Shown piece by piece: positions 9,728 through 56,593 of a stretch of DNA of 56,593 nt. Both the position numbers and the translations under genes were made by a program. The stretch's first letter is position 1, and each line of letters starts with the position of its first letter. Below the pieces are notes generated by a model. That model was given only the letters and a program-made list of their open reading frames with translations, was not told the origin of the DNA and searched no databases. Origin of the DNA: Octopus bimaculoides (Eukaryota); the NCBI RefSeq assembly GCF_001194135.2, contig NC_068985.1:36945177-37001769 (forward strand). The letters run 5' to 3'.

Positions 9728-11094
9728 ATNNNNNNNNNNNNNNNNNNNNNNNNNNNNNNNNNNNNNNNNNNNNNNNNNNNNNNNNNNNNNNNNNNNNNNN
9801 NNNNNNNNNNNNNNNNNNNNNNNNNNNNNNNNNNNNNNNNNNNNNNNNNNNNNNNNNNNNNNNNNNNNNNNNNNNNNNNNNNNNNNNNNNNNNNNNNNNN
9901 NNNNNNNNNNNNNNNNNNNNNNNNNNNNNNNNNNNNNNNNNNNNNNNNNNNNNNNNNNNNNNNNNNNNNNNNNNNNNNNNNNNNNNNNNNNNNNNNNNNN
10001 NNNNNNNNNNNNNNNNNNNNNNNNNNNNNNNNNNNNNNNNNNNNNNNNNNNNNNNNNNNNNNNNNNNNNNNNNNNNNNNNNNNNNNNNNNNNNNNNNNNN
10101 NNNNNNNNNNNNNNNNNNNNNNNNNNNNNNNNNNNNNNNNNNNNNNNNNNNNNNNNNNNNNNNNNNNNNNNNNNNNNNNNNNNNNNNNNNNNNNNNNNNN
10201 NNNNNNNNNNNNNNNNNNNNNNNNNNNNNNNNNNNNNNNNNNNNNNNNNNNNNNNNNNNNNNNNNNNNNNNNNNNNNNNNNNNNNNNNNNNNNNNNNNNN
10301 NNNNNNNNNNNNNNNNNNNNNNNNNNNNNNNNNNNNNNNNNNNNNNNNNNNNNNNNNNNNNNNNNNNNNNNNNNNNNNNNNNNNNNNNNNNNNNNNNNNN
10401 NNNNNNNNNNNNNNNNNNNNNNNNNNNNNNNNNNNNNNNNNNNNNNNNNNNNNNNNNNNNNNNNNNNNNNNNNNNNNATATATATACTTACATTCGTACA
10501 AACATACATAATAATGTAAATAAATACACAGGCGAATATCCTCATATACCTTTATACATAAACACACGTTAGTTTACGTAGCAGTTTGAAATCATATCGG
10601 TTCTTCGTTTTCTGTCGGATTGAACCATTCATCAATACAATTAATGTATTCTTAGCCCCCAACTTCTCAATAAGAACGGATTAAATAAACAAATGACTTT
10701 AAAACGAAAATCAAAACAAACAAAAAAAAAACTAAAAAAAAAACAACCAAGATAGTAACAAATAAACAAAATCGGCAAAAGCTAAAGCTCAATGCATAAA
10801 TAGCTTCCCACTCTTGTATACATGCAAAATTGCACGTTTGTGGATAGGCGCACAAAACTTTTACAGTATTTAATATGAATGGTCCGAAAGAATAAACACT
10901 TGGTAAAGCGTTGCGTGGTAATTCAAGTGTATATGAGTATGATATATACTCATGTAGGATTATATTTATACATATGTACGTACAGAGGTACATAGCTTCA
11001 CGCTTACACGTGCACACACACACGTGCACACACACGCGCACACACACGTGCACATACACACACACATACACACAGACATGTATACATACATGCA

Positions 11095-11146
<52 letters not shown>

Positions 11147-11555
11147 CATACATACATAAATACATATATACACACATATATATACACACACATATACGTG
11201 CATATATATTTCATATATATATATATATATATATAAATGTATGCATATGTGCGTGTATANNNNNNNNNNNNNNNNNNNNNNNNNNNNNNNNNNNNNNNNN
11301 NNNNNNNNNNNNNNNNNNNNNNNNNNNNNNNNNNNNNNNNNNNNNNNNNNNNNNNNNNNNNNNNNNNNNNNNNNNNNNNNNNNNNNNNNNNNNNNNNNNN
11401 NNNNNNNNNNNNNNNNNNNNNNNNNNNNNNNNNNNNNNNNNNNNNNNNNNNNNNNNNNNNNNNNNNNNNNNNNNNNNNNNNNNNNNNNNNNNNNNNNNNN
11501 NNNNNNNNNNNNNNNNNNNNNNNNNNNNNNNNNNNNNNNNNNNNNNNNNNNNNNN

Positions 11556-13618: not shown

Positions 13619-14331
13619 CTCCGTCGAAGGCTTATACACCTCAATATTAGACTTCTTTAGCCAATACACATTATTATTATTATTTACAGAATTTTCTGTC
13701 GTAATCGCTTTTCCTTTTAACGCAGGACACATACGTTTGTTTTAAAAATGCACTATAAAAATATAACTCTTTAATCTAACAGAAAGGTGTGGGTGGGTAG
13801 TTTTGTGTATTCAGTTGGCACACTTATNNNNNNNNNNNNNNNNNNNNNNNNNNNNNNNNNNNNNNNNNNNNNNNNNNNNNNNNNNNNNNNNNNNNNNNNN
13901 NNNNNNNNNNNNNNNNNNNNNNNNNNNNNNNNNNNNNNNNNNNNNNNNNNNNNNNNNNNNNNNNNNNNNNNNNNNNNNNNNNNNNNNNNNNNNNNNNNNN
14001 NNNNNNNNNNNNNNNNNNNNNNNNNNNNNNNNNNNNNNNNNNNNNNNNNNNNNNNNNNNNNNNNNNNNNNNNNNNNNNNNNNNNNNNNNNNNNNNNNNNN
14101 NNNNNNNNNNNNNNNNNNNNNNNNNNNNNNNNNNNNNNNNNNNNNNNNNNNNNNNNNNNNNNNNNNNNNNNNNNNNNNNNNNNNNNNNNNNNNNNNNNNN
14201 NNNNNNNNNNNNNNNNNNNNNNNNNNNNNNNNNNNNNNNNNNNNNNNNNNNNNNNNNNNNNNNNNNNNNNNNNNNNNNNNNNNNNNNNNNNNNNNNNNNN
14301 NNNNNNNNNNNNTATATACACACACACACAC

Positions 14332-18969: not shown

Positions 18970-19030
18970 CACACACACACATACACACATACATACATAC
19001 ACGCACACACACGTATGTATACATATGCAT

Positions 19031-19185
19031 ACAATGGGTTTTCAGTACCAAATCCACTCACAAGACTTTATTTGGCCTGGGGCTATAGAAGAAGACGCTT
19101 GCCTAAGATGCCCTGCAGTGGGACTGAACTAAAAATCGCAATGTTGGGAAACATGCTGTTTAACCCCACATCCATGCCTGCGTCT
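19031..19185 (-). mobile_element. SINE family A, 5' half
   Basis: accaaatccactcacaagac...ggctatagaagaagacgcttgcctaag...gcagtgggactgaac matches the full copies. Confidence 0.7.
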
Positions 19186-19390
19186 ACAGCAGTCTTAAGT
19201 ATGCAACTATGTTTGCGCCTTTATACACATTATAACATAAATAAATAAGAACCTAGCTTTACATTCACTGTAAGAATAAAACAAATCTTTATATAGAGCT
19301 ATAGTAACTTTATTGTTAATTGTAAATATTAAATTCAAGAAGAAATAGGAGAAACATGACTATGAGTTATTCGTTAAAAGTTTGCATTTT

Positions 19391-19666
19391 TTATGAAGGA
19401 TGTTTAGCAGGGAAGATATCTGATACATCATATGATCCACATACTTCCTCATATTCAGGCTCTTTGAATTTAAATAAATCGTCTCTTCGAATTCGGAAAG
19501 GATAGAGTGGTATTCGGCGTTGATATCCATTTGGTTTGTCCATAAATGCATAGTTTTGAGATTCAACAGCACGATTTCTTGCATCTTCTGAAGATTCTGC
19601 AGACAATATCACTCCAGTACAACAGAAGGCAACAATTATTAAGTAATTGCTCAAATACTGCTTCAT
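19391..19666 (-). CDS. putative secreted peptide/neuropeptide-like precursor, 91 aa (orphan)
   Basis: MKQYLSNYLIIVAFCCTGVILSA|ESSED... is signal-peptide-like, with basic sites QRR and RIRR. A strong splice acceptor (tttcttttgtaatctttccag, AG at 19685-19686) lies 18 nt before an initiator context CAAC-ATG. AATAAA at 19309-19314 follows the TAA stop. Non-repetitive composition. Confidence 0.62.
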   Translation of the reverse strand: MKQYLSNYLIIVAFCCTGVILSAESSEDARNRAVESQNYAFMDKPNGYQRRIPLYPFRIRRDDLFKFKEPEYEEVCGSYDVSDIFPAKHPS

Positions 19667-20661
19667 GTTGTATTTTTATAAGAACTGGAAAGATTACAAA
19701 AGAAAAGTATATATTTTACTGACTATCATTAAATAGCTACTACATGTACATCAATCTAAATTATTCAAGCAGAAAGATAAAAATTTATTCATGTTCTGGC
19801 CTTGCTACATCTCTATGAACGCAGTTTGTTATACTGCAGGAAAAAAGACTTTGTCCAAGGTACCACACAATGAAATTGAATCCCAGAATTTATTCATGTT
19901 TTTATTAACATAGCATTTCATGTCAAAAGGTTGCTTACATACATCTCTGTTATTAGGAAATGAAGAGAACTTATTACCTAATATATATATATATGATGAT
20001 TATTGTTATAAATTACCATGTGACTATCTCCAACACTTAATATGGATATGAAGTTGAGGTGTAAGATATTTAGTAGAAATGAAGATTTAATGAGAAGTCT
20101 TGTCTCTCTGCAATAAGAAAAATATTAAAAAAGGTAAAAAGCAATGAAAATTAATAATATAAAGAAAACTGATGGTTTTAACGAAGTGACTTTGAATAAC
20201 GTTCTTTACTTGCATCAGAAAATAAATAAGAAAAAAAAATTAATATTACTGTCACGTCATTGATTGCCGTCAAGTTTGGTATTCCTGCTTCAAGTATACA
20301 TGCTGGCGTTTGCTAAAAATAAAAGTATATATGTTCGTGTTTTTATCTCTTATGTATTGACAACCAGTGAGTAGCTTTCACCTACATATTCCTGCTGTCA
20401 TCTCTACTTCCAGCATTTCGGCTGAGATTTCCACTTCAGCTGACCCTTTTCACACACTTCTCTTAATAAGTGCTATCATTGTCAGCACTGATTGCTGTTC
20501 ACATAGTAGTGATTGTGGGTTAAATGCATGAAAACTACCATCCAGTAAACTAGAAATGAAAATCTCTATAAACTGACAGAACCACTGATCTTTGCAACTT
20601 TTGCAGTTCAGTTTTTCAGTCAAGTTTTATCAATACACTGAGTGTGGCAATTTGGCTGAAG

Positions 20662-20868
20662 TTACTCTCTTACTTGTTTCAGTCATTTGACTGCGGCCAT
20701 GCTAGGGCACTGCCTTTAGTCGAGCAAATTGACCCCAGGACTTATTCTTTGTAAGCCTAGTACTTATTCTATCAGTCTTTTTTGCCGAACCACTAAGTTA
20801 CGGGGACGAAAACACACCAGCATACCAGCATCGGTTGTCAAGCGATGTTGTGGGAACAAACACAGACA

Positions 20869-20910
<42 letters not shown>

Positions 20911-21084
20911 TACATATATGCGACGGTCTTCTTTCAGTTACCGTCTACCAAATCCACTCACAAGGCTTTGGTCGGCTCGAGGCTATAGTAGAAGATACTT
21001 GCCCAAGGTGCCACGCAGTGGGACTGAACCTGGAACCATGTGGTTGGTAAGCAAACTACTTACCACACAGCCACACCTGCGCCT
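20662..21084 (-). mobile_element. tRNA-derived SINE family A, full length
   Basis: Head AGGCGCAGGTGTGGCTGTGTGG (box A) ...GGTTCAGTCCC (box B), an internal CA/TG microsatellite, and a 3' stem-loop CAGTC-AAAT-GACTG followed by an AGTAA-type tail. Confidence 0.9.
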
Positions 21085-22967
21085 ATTATTATTATTTTTG
21101 TGCATCTGTGACATAATTTGTATTTATTGAATTTATAATTTGATACCTACAAGTAAAGACGGAAAATTTCCAACATCATCAAATGTTTGGCTTCAGACAC
21201 CAATTTTTTTTTTAGGCAATTGAAAGAACTTAGATTATTACAAATTCAATCATCTGGCCTTGCTCCATCTCTATGAACGCAGTTTGTTATGCTGCAGAAA
21301 ACAAGACTTGTCCAAGGTACCACACAATGAAATTGAATCCCAAACCATATAATTTTCAATGTGTTATACAAATTATATATATATATATATATAAACACAC
21401 ACACACACACATATGTATGTATATATGTATATAATTTCTATAACACATTACAAATCAACTAAATATTTAGATATTATTACTGAGTTAAATGGAATGAACA
21501 TAAAGCTGTTATGTAACAAAAAACAATAAAATTACTTTATAATTACTTATTTTAAACAATTATATATTTTGGAGATATACGAATTTTATAAACTTACAAG
21601 AGTTGTGAAATAATTCTTTTTTGGAAGAGTGGATCTCTGGGCGCATAGAGCTATAGATAATGGCATGTACATATTGGGCTGGAAGACCCGTTTTGATGGG
21701 AAAGGTCAAAGAACGCCTGTGATTGAAGCATTGTCATACATACAGGATATGTGAATTCATATCCCATGGGTAGCTTTTGACTTTTCCTGTGCAAGAAGGG
21801 TTTTTATCGGCATAATATTTGTATGAAATTATTTGTGGCTTTATGTGTTTCGAGATACACTGTCCCCAAAAAAGAACGATATATTTGTAATTTAGATAAT
21901 GTTAAACTATAAAATGAAATAGTTACATAATCTAGAATCTTCAGTTACTGAATTTGTTTTGTATTTTCATTCAAATTTCAGACAAGCTTTTTTTCTTGTA
22001 TTGTTTTGTTGTTACGTCACTGAATGAAATGTAGGAAATGCTGAGGTTTGTGATGAATTGCTATAAAAAAACGTTTTGGTTTAACTGAAATTGAACTCTG
22101 ATATAAGTAAAAATTAACATACTGATTTTGGCTGCAGGTGGAAAGATGCTAAGATCAAACTGCTGAGATTTGTTATTTTTCTATTTCTTTGCCTTTTACA
22201 ATATTGCCGTGACTTTCCTCTTTTCTACTAGATTGTGTAGGAGCTTTTAATGAAAGTTCCAACATAGCTGATCTTTATATACATCTGTACAAGCATACTC
22301 CTCCCTTATAGAATAGCGCTTCTGTTTAATCCAACACCCTGCAGTTCATTTTAGTATATTTTTTACTGTCCATGTTTCCATACTGACACAGCAAGTATTC
22401 TATTTATTCTTCATTTGTTTCCACATCTTGTCACTACTTGTCTATTTAATAGGCTACACTAATCTTATTGAATAGAAACCTACAACGAATTTAGTTGATT
22501 TTATAGCTTAAATTGAATAAAAAAATCTTCATTTTTCTTCACATGCCCCTAATAATATTTTATGATACCAAACATTAAAATATTTTTATTGGTCTCATGA
22601 AAACAATAAAGTCTTTTAATCAAACTAAAATATCATAAAAACAAATTGCTTTTTTCAAATATCTAAATACACAGAAATATATAATGTCTTGGTGAAAGTC
22701 ATATTAAGCACATGAATTTAGGTAGTGGTCACTTTAATTTACATATGGTGAAAGTTCTCTTAAAGTTACATGTCATTTATACAATACAGGCATAGAATGT
22801 ATTTTCTTGGAGATAAACAAAGTTAAATGTCAGGTATCCCTAAATTCTTGAGATTTTCCCTTAGTTGACTTGTCTAATGGCAGTTTTGACATATATATTA
22901 GAATCCTTATCCATTTTTTAAAAAATAACATGATACTGTAATAAGTTTTCTATGACTTTCTCTTCTA

Positions 22968-23371
22968 TACTCTTTTACTTGTTTCAGTCATTTGACTGCG
23001 GCCATGCTGGAGCACCGCCTTTAGTCGAGCAAATCGACCCCAGAACTTATTCTTTGTAAGCCTAGTACTTATTTTATCGATCTCTTTTGCCGAACCTATA
23101 GGTTATGGGGACATAAACACACCAGCATCGGTTGTCAAGCGATGTTGGGGGGACAAACACAGACACATAAACATACTCACACACATATATATACATATAC
23201 ATATATACGACGGGCTTCTTTCAGTTTCCGTCTACCAAATCCACTCACAAGGCTTTGGTCGGCTCGAGGCTATAGTAGAAGACACTTGCCCAAGGTGTCA
23301 CGCAGTGGGACTGAATCCGGAACCATGTGGTTGGTAAGCAAGCTACTTGCCACACAGCCACTCTCACGCCT
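22968..23371 (-). mobile_element. tRNA-derived SINE family A, full length
   Basis: Highly similar to 20662-21084 over its whole length. Confidence 0.9.
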
Positions 23372-24405
23372 AGGAGATGGATTATGAAAAAAACAATTAT
23401 GAAATCTCTACACATCTTTACAGAATACCTCCAGAATCACCGATTAAAGCAGATCCATCTTTGGATTTAAGATGAGCGGTAGTTGATGGGTTTTTTTTTG
23501 TAACAAGTTGTACTCTTTTATTAAAGCTTACTTAGATATTAACAAATACGCTAAACCACAATTTCTCTTGCTTGATTTCTAGTGAATTCCTCACTTGGCA
23601 TTCCTGACGAGTTTAGTCAGTACTCTCCCCTACTGCCATGAATACAGTTTATACTGGATCACATGGTAGCAGCGCACATGTTTGTGATTTAACATACAAA
23701 AGACACACACTTATGAATTGTACATGTATACACATTGGAGACAGTTAACAAAGGACAGCAAAGCAACTCCGACAAAAAATGTGGTGAGGATGGCACAGTA
23801 GTTGTTGGTGAGCGGAGTTGCTTGTGGGTACATGGCTAACAGAATCAATGTTTTCAGTCAAATTAAAAAAAAAAAAAGTTGCATGTGCATACATGTCATT
23901 TTCAGAAGTAAAAAGTGGATTAATGTGTTATGTTTTTAGAAATGATTGAGTTATTAAGCTGGAGTTTTCCATTCTTAGTTTAAATATCATTCTATGACAT
24001 CGATGTTCATATGTATGTATATGTACATATATATATATGTAAATGTGTGTGTGCCGTGTATACTGTATGTATTTGCATGTGTGTATGTGCGTATTTACGT
24101 AATATATTCGTATCACAAAAATTAAAACTTCTTTTTTATTAGTGTAAGCACGTAAGCTATAAAATCAACAAGTGGGAGATTTTTGTGAACGCTGCAACGT
24201 ATTATTCGTTTTTATAGCTTGCATTATTTTAAAAGAATTCTTTTATAGTGCCAATAAAATAGTTGATCAAATGTCATTTAAATACTGTACAGTGTTTCAT
24301 TAAAACCCAAATGATATTAATGAGAAATCCTCATCACCTGCCAGCTAGAATTTGCATTTGCATTGCTACGATGACATGTCATATATTCTGCTCTATCAGG
24401 GATGT

Positions 24406-24605: not shown

Positions 24606-25050
24606 NNNNNNNNNNNNNNNNNNNNNNNNNNNNNNNNNNNNNNNNNNNNNNNNNNNNNNNNNNNNNNNNNNNNNNNNNNNNNNNNNNNNNNNNNNNNNNN
24701 NNNNNNNNNNNNNNNNNNNNNNNNNNNNNNNNNNNNNNNNNNNNNNNNNNNNNNNNNNNNNNNNNNNNNNNNNNNNNNNNNNNNNNNNNNNNNNNNNNNN
24801 NNNNNNNNNNNNNNNNNNNNNNNNNNTTTATATTTATATATTTGATCCTTTATATTGAACACTCAATATTTCATCTACATTCAATACTTTATTTCACGGT
24901 GCCATCCATTTTTATTTTATTTTATTTTATATTATATATTGTATATTATATTATATATGTTGTATATTCCATATTCTATACCCCACATTGGTTCTGCAGG
25001 AATATAAATAAAACATAAAAAACAGACAGTGTTGGAACTCTTTTAAAGAA

Positions 25051-26030: not shown

Positions 26031-26243
26031 TCTGCTCATACTTAAGCACTGTTTTGCGCCAATGCTTCGTTTTATATATANNNNNNNNNNGGATAGACCA
26101 CGGTTAAGCTCCAGGTTCGGAGGTTATGTCAATAAGGGGTCCAACGTAGGTCATATATCAACGTGTGAATATAAGGATTTACTTTTCGTAATGAGATAAA
26201 AGACCAAGGCTGTGTATAATATAGAACATTTATAAATAGAATT

Positions 26244-28903: not shown

Positions 28904-30003
28904 TGTAAGAACGACCGTGCGAACTCAAAAAGGAGAAATGGTGACGAATGGAAAAAACAGAGGACTCCTTTTATTTAAACGTGTCACACGGTCGAACACA
29001 AAATAGTATATCAAAGATGATATACAAATAATTTTATACTTCGATAACATTAGTGAATTCGTAAATACCAGTAATGAAGAGACGATAGAAGGCAACCGTA
29101 TGAAATGAATAACAGAGATATTTATTGTGGCATTAAAGTGTATGTCTGTGTAAGAGTGTGAATGCGACATATAAGAACATAATCAAAGACAGGCCGTCGT
29201 ACAAAGAAAAGTATGTATGTGAGTGATACATGTATGTGTATGTAAGATATTACAGCAGATAGAAAGAGTCAGTAACACGTGAGCATTTATACCAGTTCTT
29301 GAGTACACATTAGGAAAAGTCTGTATGTGAGAGTAGTTGAGGCTGTGTGTGGCAGAGCTGATCACTAGTTGTGATGTTGTGGCATCGAGGCCGGGCCGTG
29401 ATTCTTGTTATACAGATNNNNNNNNNNNNNNNNNNNNNNNNNNNNNNNNNNNNNNNNNNNNNNNNNNNNNNNNNNNNNNNNNNNNNNNNNNNNNNNNNNN
29501 NNNNNNNNNNNNNNNNNNNNNNNNNNNNNNNNNNNNNNNNNNNNNNNNNNNNNNNNNNNNNNNNNNNNNNNNNNNNNNNNNNNNNNNNNNNNNNNNNNNN
29601 NNNNNNNNNNNNNNNNNNNNNNNNNNNNNNNNNNNNNNNNNNNNNNNNNNCTGTCGTGTGGTACACGGAACAGATCTCAAAGAGAACTGAACCGAGACGA
29701 ATTTGGCAGCCGAGTTAAAGCTATTTATAACAAACTATCGGCTCCCGAAGGCTTCAGAAAAATACTCTATCACGTGACCTTATTAGGGGCCGTGATTGGT
29801 CAGTTTGCGTTCTGGCAGGAACGGTTCGAAGAAGTTGCCGATTCGAATAATAATCAGTCACGTGATGACAAGGAATGGGTTCTCCGCTACGTCCGCGTTT
29901 GTTTATATTTAAATGAGAAGATTGTATGTAATGGCGATAGTAGTTTTGTATCTAATGGCGATAGGTAGTTTTGTATCTAATGGCGATAGGTAGTTTCGCT
30001 ACA
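28904..30003 (-). mobile_element. probable solo LTR (Gypsy-like), includes a 233-N gap
   Basis: TGTA...TACA termini and TATA on both flanks (28900-28903, 30004-30007). On the minus strand, in order: three ~25-bp tandem repeats (29929-29996), two TCACGTGA E-boxes (29858, 29770), CCAAT (29795-29799), TATAAATA (29722-29729) and AATAAA (29121, 28970). Confidence 0.7.
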
Positions 30004-34046: not shown

Positions 34047-37000
34047 TAAACTTCCTCAGGTAATTCGAATAGTTCTAAAGAATATGTACACATTGTTTAG
34101 CTACGATTGCCTTGTAAGATCGATAGGAAAGAAATCATTAAACTCATTTGATTCGCTGAGCTCCAATTCTATGTCCTGTCGAGATCAACTTAATTTTCAT
34201 CTTTTCCGGGGAAAATAAAAACATAACGATTCAAGGCGCGGGAGATTGGCGAAATTGTAAAAATGTCAACCTGGATGCCTTGCAGTATTTGTTCTGGCAT
34301 TTTGCGTCCAAATACAACTTGGTTGGTTGATTGAATCCAATTTAACAACACCACTTGGTTAATGGACCAGGTGCCTTTAGAGGCACAGCAGAACCCACTG
34401 TTGCAAACACTCGGGGTAGGTCTCCGTTTTAAGGATTGTCATATTCCTCCCCACTATTATAAGAGGCCCTTCCTTCCCTCCTGACTAAAAAGGTAGCGTG
34501 GCATGCTCATTTGACACCAGAGCGAACACAAAGAAAAAAGGAGTAGAATATTATACCAACCTGAAATATGAAATCCTCGAGTGTTGGAACAGAGAAGTTA
34601 GCAAGGTCTTATACTACCGACTATCATTTAAGCTTTGGGAGGAAAGATGAGAGAAAAATCTGAGAAGAAACCTTAAAAATACTTGGTCTTATCTTAGGAG
34701 TTAGCGTAGAGCAGCAATCGTCTACTAGACTCAGTAATAATTATTCAGAAGTATGAACAAATGTGAAGAGCTGAAAATATTTTATTGAGAAGGTACAAAA
34801 TGCTCCTCATCTGAGACGACGATTTGTATTTCGATAAATTGAGTACAACGTTAATTATGTGAGAAACAGAACATAATAATGATGACGATGATGACGATTA
34901 TGCTGACGACTCTACTGTCGACGACGATGATGATAACGATGATTATTACAGCGACGACGGCAATGATTATAAATGATATTCTCAAAGGTTTACGCTTACG
35001 AAATTTATACATACAAACACGAATCAGTATTCAATGATTCTACGCTTCCAATTTTATATCAGTATTTCTTCTTACACTTCACATCTCTCTTAATACTTAC
35101 ACTGTATATTACGTATACACCTAGCTTATTAAAATTTATATCCCATATATACTCGAGTATATACACTTGTGATTTGTTGTAATGTTGAACGTTAAATGAA
35201 GGAAGCAGCTTAGGCAGTTGAGAGTATTTAATCACTTACTCGCTCTTGCTCTAAGTCATAAGTTAATGACTCGGTAGGCGATTGTACAAAATCACAAAAG
35301 AAGGAAAGATGATGATGGTAGCAATAGCAATAATGATAATGACGATAATAATGATGACGATGACGACGACGACGATGAGGATAATGATGACGAGCACGAC
35401 GATGGTGATGATGATGATGATGACGACGACGACGCAAAATCAGTGCGTCTTCAAAACTTTTATAGAAACATCTAAACACAGGCAAACATCGTGGGATATA
35501 AACACACACACACAAACACACACAAATAGAAAAGAAAAGAAAAGATCGCCCGGTCCTTAATGAAATCAATTGCGGGAAAACAGAAATATTCAAAATAGAC
35601 AAGAACTACAGAAATATAAAAAAAACAACAGAAAGAAATGAAGTATGTGGAGTCAACGAACGCCTGAAACAAGAGATCAACAGAAATGCTAGTCGTTATA
35701 AAATAAAAAAGACAACGGTCCTGCTTTTTATACCCATCTCCTATCAAAATTATTTTTAAAGAACTATTTAAAAATAACCAAGAAACCGAAGCAGCCCCAT
35801 TGGCTAGCAAAGCAGAAGGATTTTAAGGAAGAACATGAACAACGAATAATAAGAAGGCTAGAAGTAGCTCATGCGTTTCAAAGAAAATGAACAATTGGAA
35901 AACAACAGGATGTGAGGGAGTTTTAAACCTCAGGTTAAAATATTTAACAGACGCACGGAATGGTTGTAAAAATATTGAATAATTACTTGAATGGCTCACC
36001 GAGGGGTAAAACATCTTAATGTGCAAGAGCACAGAAACCATAAACCCTCAAACTAAATATTTATTATTTGGGCGTCTATAGTGTACGAAGCTTTAACTGC
36101 AGTAGTATCGCAGAGAATAAAAATTGAAACAATAAAATAAAAATAAAATGAAATAATTCACATCTATAAGAAGAGAAAGACTCATAAGAATTAATGAAGC
36201 CATAATCGAAAATTCGAGAAGAATGAACAGTCTGAAGCTGGCATAGGTTTTTGAGTGTAACTCAGTCGCAAATTTTGGAAAGATCAGTTATGAACGTAAC
36301 AGTTCTAACAAAATATGTCATGAAGAAGTACCGAAGATTTCTGTAGATATAAATAAAAATGGGATATATATTATACAAATAAAAATAGTATTAGAAAAAG
36401 AAAATTTCCACGATGACTCCAACTCTTACATTTCTTATCCGCTCAGGAGTGACCAATTTAAGTAACATACTAACCCTGATTGAATTTGGTTAGAAATAAT
36501 ATGAGAGAACAAGATGCCATTTTATGTGTATAGCTGATGTTTAATTTTAGATTTCAGATTACAAATAACTGGAAATATTAAAGACTGTTTATGATTCAAA
36601 TAGGACTGACATAAAATTTGGTTCTATAAAGTGAAGCAAGGCAATCTTGAGGAAATGAGAATTAAAAGAAACAACGCTAATATCATGTTAAATAAAGAAA
36701 GTGCTAAGATAACTAGTCAAAGACATATACATATAAAATCGTAAGAATTTTCTAAATAGACAGAAAAAGAAAAGATTTGCGAAGAATGTTATAAACGCAT
36801 CCTCTGTGCGATGATTTGCATGAGGTGGAGGTTGTCGTGGTCCGGATTTTCTGTCCGGATTTGCTGACCATATTACCGTCAGCAAGAGCCAAAATATTTG
36901 TTAGTACATAAGCATGAATCTTAAATTCTGCGTCTTTATGCTTTCGGATATATCAGGGTTTGGTAGCCGCATACAAAAATTCAGTTGCAGTCCAATAAGC

Positions 37001-37678: not shown

Positions 37679-38204
37679 NNNNNNNNNNNNNNNNNNNNNN
37701 NNNNNNNNNNNNNNNNNNNNNNNNNNNNNNNNNNNNNNNNNNNNNNNNNNNNNNNNNNNNNNNNNNNNNNNNNNNNNNNNNNNNNNNNNNNNNNNNNNNN
37801 NNNNNNNNNNNNNNNNNNNNNNNNNNNNNNNNNNNNNNNNNNNNNNNNNNNNNNNNNNNNNNNNNNNNNNNNNNNNNNNNNNNNNNNNNNNNNNNNNNNN
37901 NNNNNNNNNNNNNNNNNNNNNNNNNNNNNNNNNNNNNNNNNNNNNNNNNNNNNNNNNNNNNNNNNNNNNNNNNNNNNNNNNNNNNNNNNNNNNNNNNNNN
38001 NNNNNNNNNNNNNNNNNNNNNNNNNNNNNNNNNNNNNNNNNNNNNNNNNNNNNNNNNNNNNNNNNNNNNNNNNNNNNNNNNNNNNNNNNNNNNNNNNNNN
38101 NNNNNNNNNNNNNNNNNNNNNNNNNNNNNNNNNNNNNNNNNNNNNNNNNNNNNNNNNNNNNNNNNNNNNNNNNNNNNNNNNNNNNNNNNNNNNNNNNNNN
38201 NNNN

Positions 38205-42452: not shown

Positions 42453-44007
42453 CGTGTGGTAATGTGTGTGTATACCTGCATGCATATAGTCTTGTGGGTA
42501 TATCAGCATGTAAGCATCTAAATATATCTCTGTAAGCATGAATGTATGTGCACACATGTATATAAATAAATAAGCATATATGTGTGTATGTATATATTTA
42601 TATTTATTATTAGCAACAACAGATATCATTTATGAAAACCGGAATTGCACACAGACAATGTAATCATTTCATATACAGATTAATATCTGTACAGTTATTT
42701 TCTTAGTGGTAAGAAAAAAAAAAAACTTATCTTAAAGAACTTCTGTAACATAAATAGAAGTTGAAAGCTAGAATCGGTTGAATCAAAATTGTGTTATCGT
42801 AGTTATGTTGTGAAACATTTGCTGGTATATCATAAATTAACATCTGATAAAATCGACTTCCAAGTTCAGCATTTTTTTACTAAGTCTGTCTGAAGTTTTC
42901 TTTTTTTCTTTTTAAATTTTGTGTATATTTTCACATCGATTTTGTTTTTAACCCGCGGAAAAAAATTTGATCGTGAACATAACATTTCCCTTCATTATTC
43001 TGATGGACAANNNNNNNNNNNNNNNNNNNNNNNNNNNNNNNNNNNNNNNNNNNNNNNNNNNNNNNNNNNNNNNNNNNNNNNNNNNNNNNNNNNNNNNNNN
43101 NNNNNNNNNNNNNNNNNNNNNNNNNNNNNNNNNNNNNNNNNNNNNNNNNNNNNNNNNNNNNNNNNNNNNNNNNNNNNNNNNNNNNNNNNNNNNNNNNNNN
43201 NNNNNNNNNNNNNNNNNNNNNNNNNNNNNNNNNNNNNNNNNNNNNNNNNNNNNNNNNNNNNNNNNNNNNNNNNNNNNNNNNNNNNNNNNNNNNNNNNNNN
43301 NNNNNNNNNNNNNNNNNNNNNNNNNNNNNNNNNNNNNNNNNNNNNNNNNNNNNNNNNNNNNNNNNNNNNNNNNNNNNNNNNNNNNNNNNNNNNNNNNNNN
43401 NNNNNNNNNNNNNNNNNNNATATATATATATATATATATATACACACAAGTATATGTGGGCACAGGACGTCATGAAATGAGTACAACAAAAACTACGAAG
43501 CACGAGCACATCGAACATAAATTATTCTTTCGAACAACGAAAGACACAAATGGAAAACAAAACAAACAACATAAAGAACGACCCTTCATTAATTGTTGGT
43601 TGTTTTTCTAGTCTTGTATTTCGAGCATTTAACAATAATATACGCTTTCGATAAAACAATTGCTCCCGCAAAGCAAATTAAATAAAATTTGGGATTTTGC
43701 GGAGGGTCAAAGCAGGTAACACAAACAGGACAGCGAAAGCAAACAGGAAGGGCTGCTAAGCCTAAACGAGGTTGTGGTGGTAACACTGCCCACTCATTAA
43801 ATCAAGTTATAAGTGGTTGAGTATTCCTCAGACACAGGTACCCTTAAAGTAATCTCAATTGTGAAATACTATGTTGAGTCTGAATTTCAGCGGGCTGAGT
43901 CTAGGCTATGGCAAAAGTACTTTCCAAACGTGTCACATTTGTGAGATCGAACTGAGGAACTCACCATTGTAAAGTGAACTTCGTAACACATTTAGATCGT
44001 TTATATA

Positions 44008-45598: not shown

Positions 45599-45889
45599 AA
45601 CTACTACTACTACTGCCNNNNNNNNNNNNNNNNNNNNNNNNNNNNNNNNNNNNNNNNNNNNNNNNNNNNNNNNNNNNNNNNNNNNNNNNNNNNNNNNNNN
45701 NNNNNNNNNNNNNNNNNNNNNNNNNNNNNNNNNNNNNNNNNNNNNNNNNNNNNNNNNNNNNNNNNNNNNNNNNNNNNNNNNNNNNNNNNNNNNNNNNNNN
45801 NNNNNNNNNNNNNNNNNNNNNNNNNNNNNNNNNNNNNNNNNNNNNNNNNNNNNNNNNNNNNNNNNNNNNNNNNNNNNNTAAGAACAAAA

Positions 45890-50515: not shown

Positions 50516-50693
50516 ATATNNNNNNNNNNNNNNNNNNNNNNNNNNNNNNNNNNNNNNNNNNNNNNNNNNNNNNNNNNNNNNNNNNNNNNNNNNNNNNNNN
50601 NNNNNNNNNNNNNNNNNNNNNNNNNNNNNNNNNNNNNNNNNNNNNNNNNNNNNNNNNNNNNNNNNNNNNNNNNNNNNNNNNNNNNNNNNNNNN

Positions 50694-55302: not shown

Positions 55303-56076
55303 TATATATATGCATACATACNNNNNNNNNNNNNNNNNNNNNNNNNNNNNNNNNNNNNNNNNNNNNNNNNNNNNNNNNNNNNNNNNNNNNNNNNNNNNNN
55401 NNNNNNNNNNNNNNNNNNNNNNNNNNNNNNNNNNNNNNNNNNNNNNNNNNNNNNNNNNNNNNNNNNNNNNNNNNNNNNNNNNNNNNNNNNNNNNNNNNNN
55501 NNNNNNNNNNNNNNNNNNNNNNNNNNNNNNNNNNNNNNNNNNNNNNNNNNNNNNNNNNNNNNNNNNNNNNNNNNNNNNNNNNNNNNNNNNNNNNNNNNNN
55601 NNNNNNNNNNNNNNNNNNNNNNNNNNNNNNNNNNNNNNNNNNNNNNNNNNNNNNNNNNNNNNNNNNNNNNNNNNNNNNNNNNNNNNNNNNNNNNNNNNNN
55701 NNNNNNNNNNNNNNNNNNNNNNNNNNNNNNNNNNNNNNNNNNNNNNNNNNNNNNNNNNNNNNNNNNNNNNNNNNNNNNNNNNNNNNNNNNNNNNNNNNNN
55801 NNNNNNNNNNNNNNNNNNNNNNNNNNNNNNNNNNNNNATATATATCCCTTTTTCCCATCTATTTACATCTCACTGAAACTGGACGAAAATTTCGGAAGGA
55901 CAGACGTTAAAACCGAGTTCGATGTCCTTAGAAACGAGAAAAAAAATAACCCCTAAGAAGCAGAGAATATTAAGAATAAGAAGCACATCTCGATGAAAGA
56001 AGCACATCTCGATGAAAGAAGCACATTATATTATACTTCTGCTCCTGCTGCCACAATAACAACAACAACAACAAAA

Positions 56077-56342: not shown

Positions 56343-56593
56343 TTTACTCTTTTACACTTTTACTTGTTTCAGTCATTTGACTGCGGCCATGCTGGAGCAC
56401 CGCCTTTAGTCGAGCAAATCGACCCCAGAACTTATTCTTTGGAAGCCTAGTACTTATTCTATCTGTCTCTTTTGCCGAACCGCTAAGTTACGGGGACGTA
56501 AACACACCAGCATCGGTTGTCAAGCGATGTTGGGGAGACAAACACAGACGCACAAACATATACACACACACATATATATATATACGTATATAC
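56343..56593 (-). mobile_element. SINE family A, 3' half (runs off the window)
   Basis: Near identical to 22968-23200. Confidence 0.9.

Follow-up and report, generated by a model that had tools for sequence, protein, structure and literature searches.

NKY-type peptides and the gene in the window

Few neuropeptide families occur in all molluscan classes, and NKY is one of them; its receptor and physiology are unsettled (PMC8557429), and it is considered related to the RY/RFamide peptide group (bioRxiv 10.1101/712687). Two subtypes of the family are distinguished, and which receptor it uses is a matter of debate. NKY peptides are recognized by a C-terminal Tyr followed by Gly, which gives an RY-amide end (PMC4200219, 10.1101/712687). 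The oyster NKY peptide, GGIWIWMPAQGYVSVPRDEVGGASNKGSSSNLLRY-NH2, begins with GGIWIWMPAQGYVSVP and ends with LLRY-NH2 (bioRxiv 10.1101/712687), and the published consensus of NKY-2 is G[YF]WIWMPAQG (PMC6425005). In cone snails, NKY-derived venom peptides have been reported (bioRxiv 10.1101/2025.09.26.678268); no report of a recruitment of this kind was found in the literature for cephalopod NKY. The locus that is compared with these systems here is a minus-strand gene, termed gene A, in a stretch of 56,593 nucleotides (nt) from Octopus bimaculoides (contig NC_068985.1, positions 36,945,177 to 37,001,769; the window, whose numbering is used below). Judged by its sequence, gene A is a previously unnamed, fast-evolving paralogue derived from NKY-2. 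It is best explained, at a probability of about 65%, as a translated, secreted, and neofunctionalized octopus-lineage duplicate of NKY-2 with a single coding exon. The other family members are termed A' (the sister paralogue), B1 and B2 (the canonical NKY-2 copies of Octopus vulgaris), and C (a pseudogene copy).

Structure of gene A

The open reading frame (ORF) of gene A, as read off the window sequence, runs from 19666 to 19391 on the minus strand and encodes 91 amino acids (aa) followed by TAA. The acceptor context is ...ATCTTTCCAG/TTCTTATAAAAATACAAC/ATG, in which 19684 is the first exon base and the leader measures 18 nt, and a poly(A) signal, AATAAA, is located at 19314-19309, with 76 nt separating it from the stop. 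An earlier reading of the window (the original prediction) had described the acceptor, the 18-nt leader, ATG, the 91-aa ORF, TAA, and AATAAA, and all are present in the sequence. An in-frame TAA precedes the ATG by four codons in the window (TCA in O. vulgaris and Octopus sinensis), so that the protein starts at MKQY.... After MK, 21 uncharged residues ending in ILSA/E reach a maximal Kyte-Doolittle value of 2.76 over 11 residues. RR is found at residues 50-51 and RIRR at residues 58-61, and a 30-aa C-terminal peptide with a net charge of -5 and one Cys completes the protein; the translation bears out the hydrophobic leader ending in ILSA, both basic sites, and the acidic C-terminal peptide described before. 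The features are as follows (all on the minus strand; UTR, untranslated region).

22123..22224, minus: candidate non-coding 5'-UTR exon, homologue of an NKY-2 exon; donor AATCA/GTATGT (GT 22122-22121), possible acceptor AG 22226-22225
21598..21690, minus: possible alternative 5'-UTR exon, homologous to the first exon in the RefSeq model of O. sinensis; donor CTCTT/GTAAGT conserved, 5' boundary approximate
19685..22122, minus: intron from the 5'-UTR exon to the coding exon; conservation is unusually high in the final ~110 nt (19798-19685)
19667..19684, minus: 18-nt 5' leader of the coding exon, TTCTTATAAAAATACAAC, with the in-frame TAA; same leader in A', B1, and B2
19598..19666, minus: predicted signal peptide, residues 1-23, MKQYLSNYLIIVAFCCTGVILSA, from the hydrophobicity and charge profile; near-identical to NKY-2 precursors
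19514..19597, minus: conserved pro-region, residues 24-51, ESSEDARNRAVESQNYAFMDKPNGYQ-RR; 2 aa differences from O. vulgaris, homologous to the NKY-2 pro-region AVATRDNALMAPPSGYQGR
19496..19513, minus: variable hexapeptide IPLYPF, residues 52-57; MLPHLL in orthologues, IPSHPL/IPFHPL in A', MPSYYI in NKY-2
19484..19495, minus: predicted furin/prohormone-convertase-type site RIRR, residues 58-61; the only basic site that every family member retains
19394..19483, minus: acidic C-terminal peptide DDLFKFKEPEYEEVCGSYDVSDIFPAKHPS of 30 aa, hypervariable; homologous in position to the NKY peptide
19391..19393, minus: stop TAA; O. vulgaris and O. sinensis have TGA here
19309..19390, minus: 3' UTR through AATAAA (19314-19309); the signal is conserved, and the UTR has an 11-nt indel, the coding sequence none

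Across the family, the RxxR site reads RIRR, QIRR, KYRR, or RTQR, as judged by eye and by conservation. A low-confidence AlphaFold model built on a seven-sequence alignment has a predicted local distance difference test score of 56 and a predicted template modeling score of 0.24, and only its N-terminal signal segment is helical, which would fit the expected flexible propeptide with no folded domain beyond the signal helix. Pfam scans of the gene A ORF, A', and canonical NKY-2 matched no family, and a sequence search of the PDB returned noise only.

Descent from NKY-2

Gene A was initially regarded as an orphan, but orthologues, the sister paralogue A', and the parent family NKY-2 have been found. 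A profile of three gene A orthologues matches an NKY-2-type protein of Argonauta with E=5.3e-7 among 1.8 billion proteins, and a search with the family profile retrieves 112-aa proteins from O. vulgaris, O. bimaculoides, and Argonauta hians as well as a more distant cephalopod contig. The sequence of these 112-aa proteins is MKQYFSSQLIIFTFCCIGVILSG...DKNLLSLITRAAVATRDNALMAPPSGYQGRMPSYYIRTQRELKR-EPNWIWMPSHGYVPVPEPSN...GSTILRY-G. They match the NKY-2 consensus and the oyster NKY peptide and are therefore cephalopod NKY-2 precursors (for example, CAI9722526.1 of O. vulgaris, A0A0L8HY72/HY98 of O. bimaculoides, and GAB1602875.1 of A. hians). With the signal peptides removed, the pro-region AVESQNYAFMDKPNGYQRRIPLYPFRIRR of gene A still aligns with AVATRDNALMAPPSGYQGRMPSYYIRTQR of NKY-2 (hhalign 89.7%, E=1.9e-6), and tblastn of gene A against the O. 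vulgaris NKY-2 exon yields 4e-13. A tblastx comparison of the Argonauta locus with the window has the gene A ORF as its sole match.

Gene A and NKY-2 share the signal peptide MKQY[LF]S.QLIIF.FCCIGVIL, the pro-region pattern A-V-x-[ST]-x-[ND]-x-A-[FL]-M-x2-[PS]-x-G-Y-Q-x-R-x-P-x-Y, and the RxxR site in a single coding exon. The acceptor 18 nt before the ATG, the leader, and the 5'-UTR exon are common to both as well; acceptor and leader are the same in A, A', B1, and B2, and in the NKY-2 gene of a distant cephalopod (L010), the acceptor is located 9 nt before the ATG. For NKY-2, the junction is proven to be real by a spliced transcript contig (L008), which joins a 5' exon (L011:40107-40148; L008 nt 370-411) to the coding exon. 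The segment 22224..22123 of the window is homologous to the O. vulgaris NKY-2 model exons at L011:40062-40148 and L009:~36806-36847, its donor AATCA/GTATGT is conserved in the window, O. vulgaris, and O. sinensis, and it is the putative 5'-UTR exon of gene A itself. As acceptor, leader, and 5'-UTR exon are shared with NKY-2, the single-coding-exon architecture is inherited from it. The secreted-peptide-precursor layout that the original prediction recognized, with one coding exon behind a 5'-UTR intron, is thus supported, as a layout that gene A has in common with its parent neuropeptide gene. In terms of descent, gene A is a paralogue of NKY-2.

Contig L008 and the Argonauta protein were also considered as gene A orthologues and were rejected, as both are canonical NKY-2. 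An argonaut origin of L008 was rejected too: at ~95% identity to B1/B2 of O. vulgaris, it comes from an Octopus-like species. Nucleotides 1-369 of L008 match nothing in 130 kb of O. vulgaris cluster sequence. Upstream AUGs occur in this segment several times, together with an in-frame TAG through which the gene caller read, and the segment may represent exons located far upstream or a chimeric assembly. Two ENA contig translations (P0007 and P0009, 1252 and 1595 aa) consist of ~60-aa repeats, ...GKPPGQEKRFLTHQQRMSVDSGMKFPRIFGNAPQN..., of which five stretches match the family profile with E=5.6e-6. These weak matches were set aside, since they probably reflect resemblance in composition or dibasic sites.

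Gene A differs from NKY-2 in several features. It lacks the 12-residue DKNLLSLITR segment of NKY-2, and in place of REPNWIWMPSHG in Octopus NKY-2, it has KEPEYEEVC-GS, from which the WIWMP core is missing. It ends in ...IFPAKHPS directly before the stop, with no Gly donor and no RY, ~20 residues before the end of NKY-2. As for the Lys with which mature NKY peptides begin, a Lys of gene A (FKFK-EP) aligns with NKY-2 LKR-EP, but the predicted cleavage in gene A lies upstream, at RIRR. The loss of the DKNLLSLITR segment, of the WIWMP[AS][QH]G core, and of RY-Gly and the earlier end are shared with A', as are the gain of QRR (GR in NKY-2), of a Cys, and of an acidic composition. A and A' have the skeleton P-x-[YF]-x3-C-x2-3-[YF]-x-[VI]-S-x2-[FL]-[PS], which aligns with ...EP.W...GYVPVPEP of NKY-2. 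Under the published definition, which comprises the core motif and the C-terminal Tyr-amide, the predicted product of gene A is not an NKY peptide. It also differs from NPY/NPF and sNPF/LFRFamide in that it has no RF/RY-amide end and no detected sequence similarity. A literature search for the A-type peptide motifs or for LOC118763463, the O. sinensis gene, returned only the two NKY-2 papers, and no paper in the library searched contains either.

Orthologues and the gene model

The exact gene A protein is already held in UniRef, and its nearest relatives are Octopus proteins. A large protein search gives CAI9722653.1 of O. vulgaris and XP_036359008.1 (LOC118763463) of O. sinensis as orthologues, each 76% identical and annotated as "uncharacterized". 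The orthologous loci (L001 and L002) are colinear with the window for >20 kb at ~86-91% identity. Lack of conservation in related species had been named beforehand as a reason to drop the gene, but its ORF is intact in O. vulgaris and O. sinensis, and ATG, stop position, acceptor, and AATAAA are all kept at the syntenic loci. By virtue of this conservation, the ORF and its signals go beyond chance. Three independent annotations predict gene A. Those of O. vulgaris and O. sinensis each consist of two exons joined across a GT..AG intron and use exactly the acceptor of gene A.

These models bear on a further explanation, according to which the exon opens the coding sequence of a larger protein, a possibility that the original prediction had raised against itself, or the ORF lies within a regulatory element or non-coding RNA. 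In both species, the models do add N-terminal extensions, and the O. vulgaris model CAI9722527.1 splices A' into the downstream NKY-2 gene. The extensions of CAI9722653.1 and XP_036359008.1, however, come from two different upstream exons that are not conserved, and in the window they are closed by the in-frame TAA and by the loss of a start. In the window homologue of O. sinensis exon 1, the ATG of the model is ACG and the frame is disrupted by indels, so the exon at 21598..21690 is non-coding in the window. Exon 1 of the O. vulgaris model would fall into the small assembly gap at 26081-26090 and is therefore not assessable in the window. Since the upstream extensions are non-conserved and closed in the window, MKQY... 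is the conserved start. At the other end, the stop and AATAAA are conserved, no coding exon follows, and the vicinity yielded no further conserved coding sequence. A conserved block that crosses the intron/exon border (19798-19514) would suit this explanation; no RNA structure signal was obtained (z=-0.59). Either version of the explanation is therefore highly improbable. Non-conserved N-terminal extensions bury the signal peptide in the models CAI9722525.1, CAI9722653.1, and XP_036359008.1.

Paralogues and family layout

In O. vulgaris, the NKY-2 cluster extends over roughly 105 kb of chromosome OX597818.1, at ~24.27-24.37 Mb (L011, 24305291-24380885, and L009). It contains B1, an intact A' of 87 aa, the pseudogene C with a stop at codon 8 together with fragments (L011:25511-25868), and B2, which adjoins Selenoprotein S. 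The O. vulgaris orthologue of gene A is located on the same chromosome at a distance of about 7 Mb from this cluster, and neither the window nor the +-10 kb around the orthologues contains tandem paralogues. The idea that gene A is hosted in a Selenoprotein-S intron was rejected, since that neighborhood belongs to the NKY-2 copy B2.

A' resembles gene A in the absence of DKNLLSLITR, the presence of QRR and [RQ]IRR, the single Cys, the [FV]-S/L-x-x-F-P tail without RY-Gly, and an intact, fast-evolving ORF. It differs in its position within the NKY-2 cluster beside B2/Selenoprotein S, in its protein sequence (58-63% identity), and in a 4-codon deletion in the C-terminal peptide. In O. vulgaris, A' lies at L011:10001-10264 and is fused into the model CAI9722527.1, a chimera that leaves the A' ORF just after RIRRNG and is spliced into the 5'-UTR and coding exons of B2. 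The orthologue of A' is the Logan contig L003 from another species; L003 had been considered a distant-octopod orthologue of gene A, which was rejected because its DNA is 85.5% identical to A' versus 75.7% to gene A. The A and A' loci share 74-78% nt identity over >1.2 kb, compared with 85-87% between orthologues. As A and A' are more diverged than orthologues, their split predates the divergence of O. bimaculoides and O. vulgaris. A third intact A-like ORF of 82 aa, MKQYLSNQLIIFVFCCIGIIQTAESS...RKYRRAMKQVDDDDERKEYYYVSDPFPNF, is found in L004-L006 (Logan SRR11869384/85/91). It is only 39-44% identical to A and A', its 3' UTR resembles that of NKY-2, and it may be either a paralogue or a distant orthologue.

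Evolutionary rates and maintenance of the ORF

The two halves of the gene A ORF diverge at very different rates. Between the window and O. vulgaris, codons 1-51 differ at 5/153 nt (3.3%) and codons 52-91 at 28/120 (23%; Fisher p=4e-7 for the contrast), compared with an 8.0% mismatch and ~8 gap openings per kb in 15 kb of flanking non-coding DNA. Nonsynonymous (dN) and synonymous (dS) divergence was estimated by the Nei-Gojobori method, with only two lineages compared per gene. A comparison of dN/dS (omega) among orthologues had been suggested in the original prediction, and in the C-terminal half of gene A it gives a dN of 0.31-0.34, a dS of 0.10, and an omega of 3.1-3.5. This dN is ~3x the flanking divergence. 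The A' orthologues show an omega of 1.6, with a dN of 0.25 against a flank mismatch of 0.12. The excess of dN over local non-coding divergence has a binomial P=5e-8 for A and P=0.015 for A'. NKY-2 copies, in contrast, have a dN/dS of 0.07-0.2 that is lowest in the mature peptide; purifying selection on this region is seen in NKY-2, with values of 0.07-0.14, but not in A or A', and the overall ratio of gene A is at least 1 against about 0.1 in NKY-2.

The reading frame has nevertheless been maintained beyond neutral expectation. The window and its O. vulgaris and O. sinensis counterparts all retain the start, an intact frame, the stop, the acceptor, and the poly(A) signal, and gene A carries no disabling mutation; copy C, in comparison, has a stop at codon 8. 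When neutral evolution was simulated on the A/A' tree, all four ORFs (80-105 codons) stayed open in 0.33% of runs without indels; with indels, the fraction fell to 0.035% at 0.05 per substitution and to 0/20,000 runs at 0.1, and at the empirical indel rate it is below 0.005%. Selection thus appears to keep the reading frame of gene A while the C-terminal peptide diversifies, with relaxed constraint and a lucky survival of the ORF as the other possible reading of these rates.

That other reading takes gene A as a decaying or non-functional NKY-2 duplicate, either an unprocessed pseudogene or a transcribed relic, whose ORF survived by chance or gene conversion. It would account for a dN/dS of at least 1 between orthologues and between paralogues and for the loss of the NKY-defining WIWMP core and RY-Gly end, and it suits a family that yields pseudogenes (copy C and the L011 fragments), a gene A transcript missing from the Logan assemblies, and a conserved 5' block that is not purely coding. 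It is at odds with the intact 87-91-codon ORFs in two lineages each of A and A', which retain the same start, RxxR site, and Cys/aromatic skeleton. The stop position is identical in the A orthologues, and all differences in coding length are in frame. The simulation (P <=0.003) argues in the same direction, as does a dN in the C-terminal half that is 2-3 fold above non-coding divergence, which drift alone does not produce. Moreover, acceptor, poly(A) signal, and 5'-exon donor are conserved, and the three annotations are independent. A relic is therefore considered unlikely.

The 5' conservation has features of its own. The minus-strand block 19798-19514 (~280 nt) covers the intron end, the leader, and the coding sequence of signal peptide and pro-region and is ~3.5% diverged versus ~8% in the background. 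The last 110 aligned nt of the intron contain 4 mismatches against the background of about 8%. Among NKY-2 orthologues, the exon dS is 0.19-0.29 in the 5' half versus 0.65-0.88 in the 3' half, and between A and A', synonymous divergence is 0.04-0.14 versus 0.5-0.75. RNA structure gave no signal as a cause of this synonymous conservation at the z-score given above. The block could stem from splicing or regulatory constraint or from gene conversion.

Several points weigh against a neofunctionalized, secreted duplicate. The conservation of the N-terminal half includes synonymous sites and extends into the intron, so that part of the signal may act at the DNA level, through a regulatory element or conversion between paralogues, and such constraint or conversion could have helped to keep the ORFs open. 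An overall dN/dS of at least 1 is also a product of relaxed constraint. The Fisher test of nonsynonymous versus synonymous changes alone is not significant (p=0.12; 0.06, one-sided, for A and A' pooled), and among the 120-column windows scanned empirically in the flanks, 1.9% reach the same divergence. The tree lengths of the simulation are estimates of this analysis, and the cleavage sites of gene A were judged by eye and by conservation. No transcript, junction read, or peptide of gene A was found, and no Logan assembly carries the protein; the one spliced contig recovered is of canonical NKY-2. Finally, the NKY pharmacophore has been lost from gene A.

Proposed processing and role of the product

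For the neofunctionalized duplicate, a path can be proposed from transcription of the A copy through secretion and cleavage to an active fragment with a tissue and a target of its own. One or more non-coding 5' exons, with 22224..22123 as the best candidate, would be spliced to the acceptor at 19685/19684, and translation would begin at the ATG at 19666. The 23-residue signal peptide, which is nearly unchanged from NKY-2, would direct the 91-aa prepropeptide into the secretory pathway. Subsequently, a furin/prohormone-convertase-type enzyme would cleave at the family-wide RIRR (58-61) and possibly at the A-type-specific QRR (50-51). Three products are predicted: an N-terminal pro-peptide of 26 aa, which is conserved; a hexapeptide, which varies; and an acidic C-terminal peptide of 30 aa with one Cys and no amidation. 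The latter would sit at the position of the NKY peptide without its WIWMP[AS][QH]G core or RY-amide end. As it evolves very fast, a new function and a new target are most likely, rather than a role as NKY ligand.

The more specific proposals on the products fare less well. IPLYPF had been put forward as a released peptide, but a conserved bioactive hexapeptide is unlikely, because the sequence varies (MLPHLL in orthologues, IPSHPL/IPFHPL in A') and the preceding RR is GR in canonical NKY-2. Sulfation of Tyr finds no support in conservation, as the Tyr residues proposed for it are Phe in A'. The single Cys is kept in A and A' but is absent from the L004 type and from NKY-2.

A conserved signal peptide and pro-region combined with a hypervariable mature peptide is the pattern of conotoxin-type genes. 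As a sub-case of the neofunctionalized duplicate, gene A may have been recruited to an exocrine or external role, such as salivary venom or reproductive or chemical signaling, instead of acting as an internal neuropeptide, which would account for an arms-race-like evolution of its C-terminal peptide. Its signal and pro-region are ultra-conserved, and its C-terminal peptide is hypervariable and has a dN above the neutral level, in keeping with this pattern. Like doppelganger toxins and conotoxin-type genes, gene A is the duplicate of a neuropeptide gene with an accelerated C-terminal region. The recruitment of NKY genes by cone-snail venom is in line with such a role (bioRxiv 10.1101/2025.09.26.678268). 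So is the expression in cephalopod salivary glands of many short secreted proteins that have no known function and are restricted to cephalopods (bioRxiv 10.64898/2026.02.02.703354). On the other hand, that source, a cephalopod venom survey with NKY among its molluscan queries, reports no NKY mimic. In contrast to doppelganger toxins, including those derived from NKY in Conus, gene A has lost the neuropeptide pharmacophore, and its peptide is therefore not an NKY mimic. Its 5' UTR is inherited from the parent rather than swapped, and it is a single gene with one paralogue and no large tandem array. An exocrine role is thus rather unlikely.

Surroundings of gene A in the window

The DNA of the window is AT-rich and contains microsatellites and 13 runs of N (3965 N in total), which are mostly flanked by microsatellites. 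A fragment of a mariner-type transposase ORF is present at 800-1246 on the plus strand (Pfam Transposase_1, E=3.9e-20). An interspersed repeat of ~400 bp occurs at 22964-23372, 20663-21085, and 56353-56593, with weaker copies near 44.0-44.3 kb and at 18979-19128. It is found just upstream of the candidate 5'-UTR exon and within the intron of gene A, and several copies are present in the O. vulgaris and O. sinensis loci. Assembly gaps are located at the following positions.

9730-10477, 11260-11555, 13828-14312, 24606-24826, 26081-26090, 29418-29650: assembly gaps (N runs), first part
37679-38204, 43011-43419, 45618-45878, 50520-50693, 55322-55837: assembly gaps (N runs), second part

Implications for the NKY family

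The results name loci that are annotated as "uncharacterized protein" in three Octopus genomes and provide them with a testable gene model. In addition, misannotated N-terminal extensions and one chimeric model are flagged in the NKY-2 cluster. With its ligand rebuilt on a retained scaffold for secretion and processing, such a lineage-specific duplicate is a natural experiment in the origin of new signaling peptides or toxins from neuropeptide genes. It is tentatively conceivable that A, A', and perhaps the L004 type form an octopus subfamily, in which the NKY-2-derived scaffold carries a new acidic Cys peptide under diversifying selection, possibly with an external target. If true, this would be a cephalopod case of a peptide gene with a conserved signal and a hypervariable product that was born from a neuropeptide, and its target would be prey, a mate, or a conspecific.

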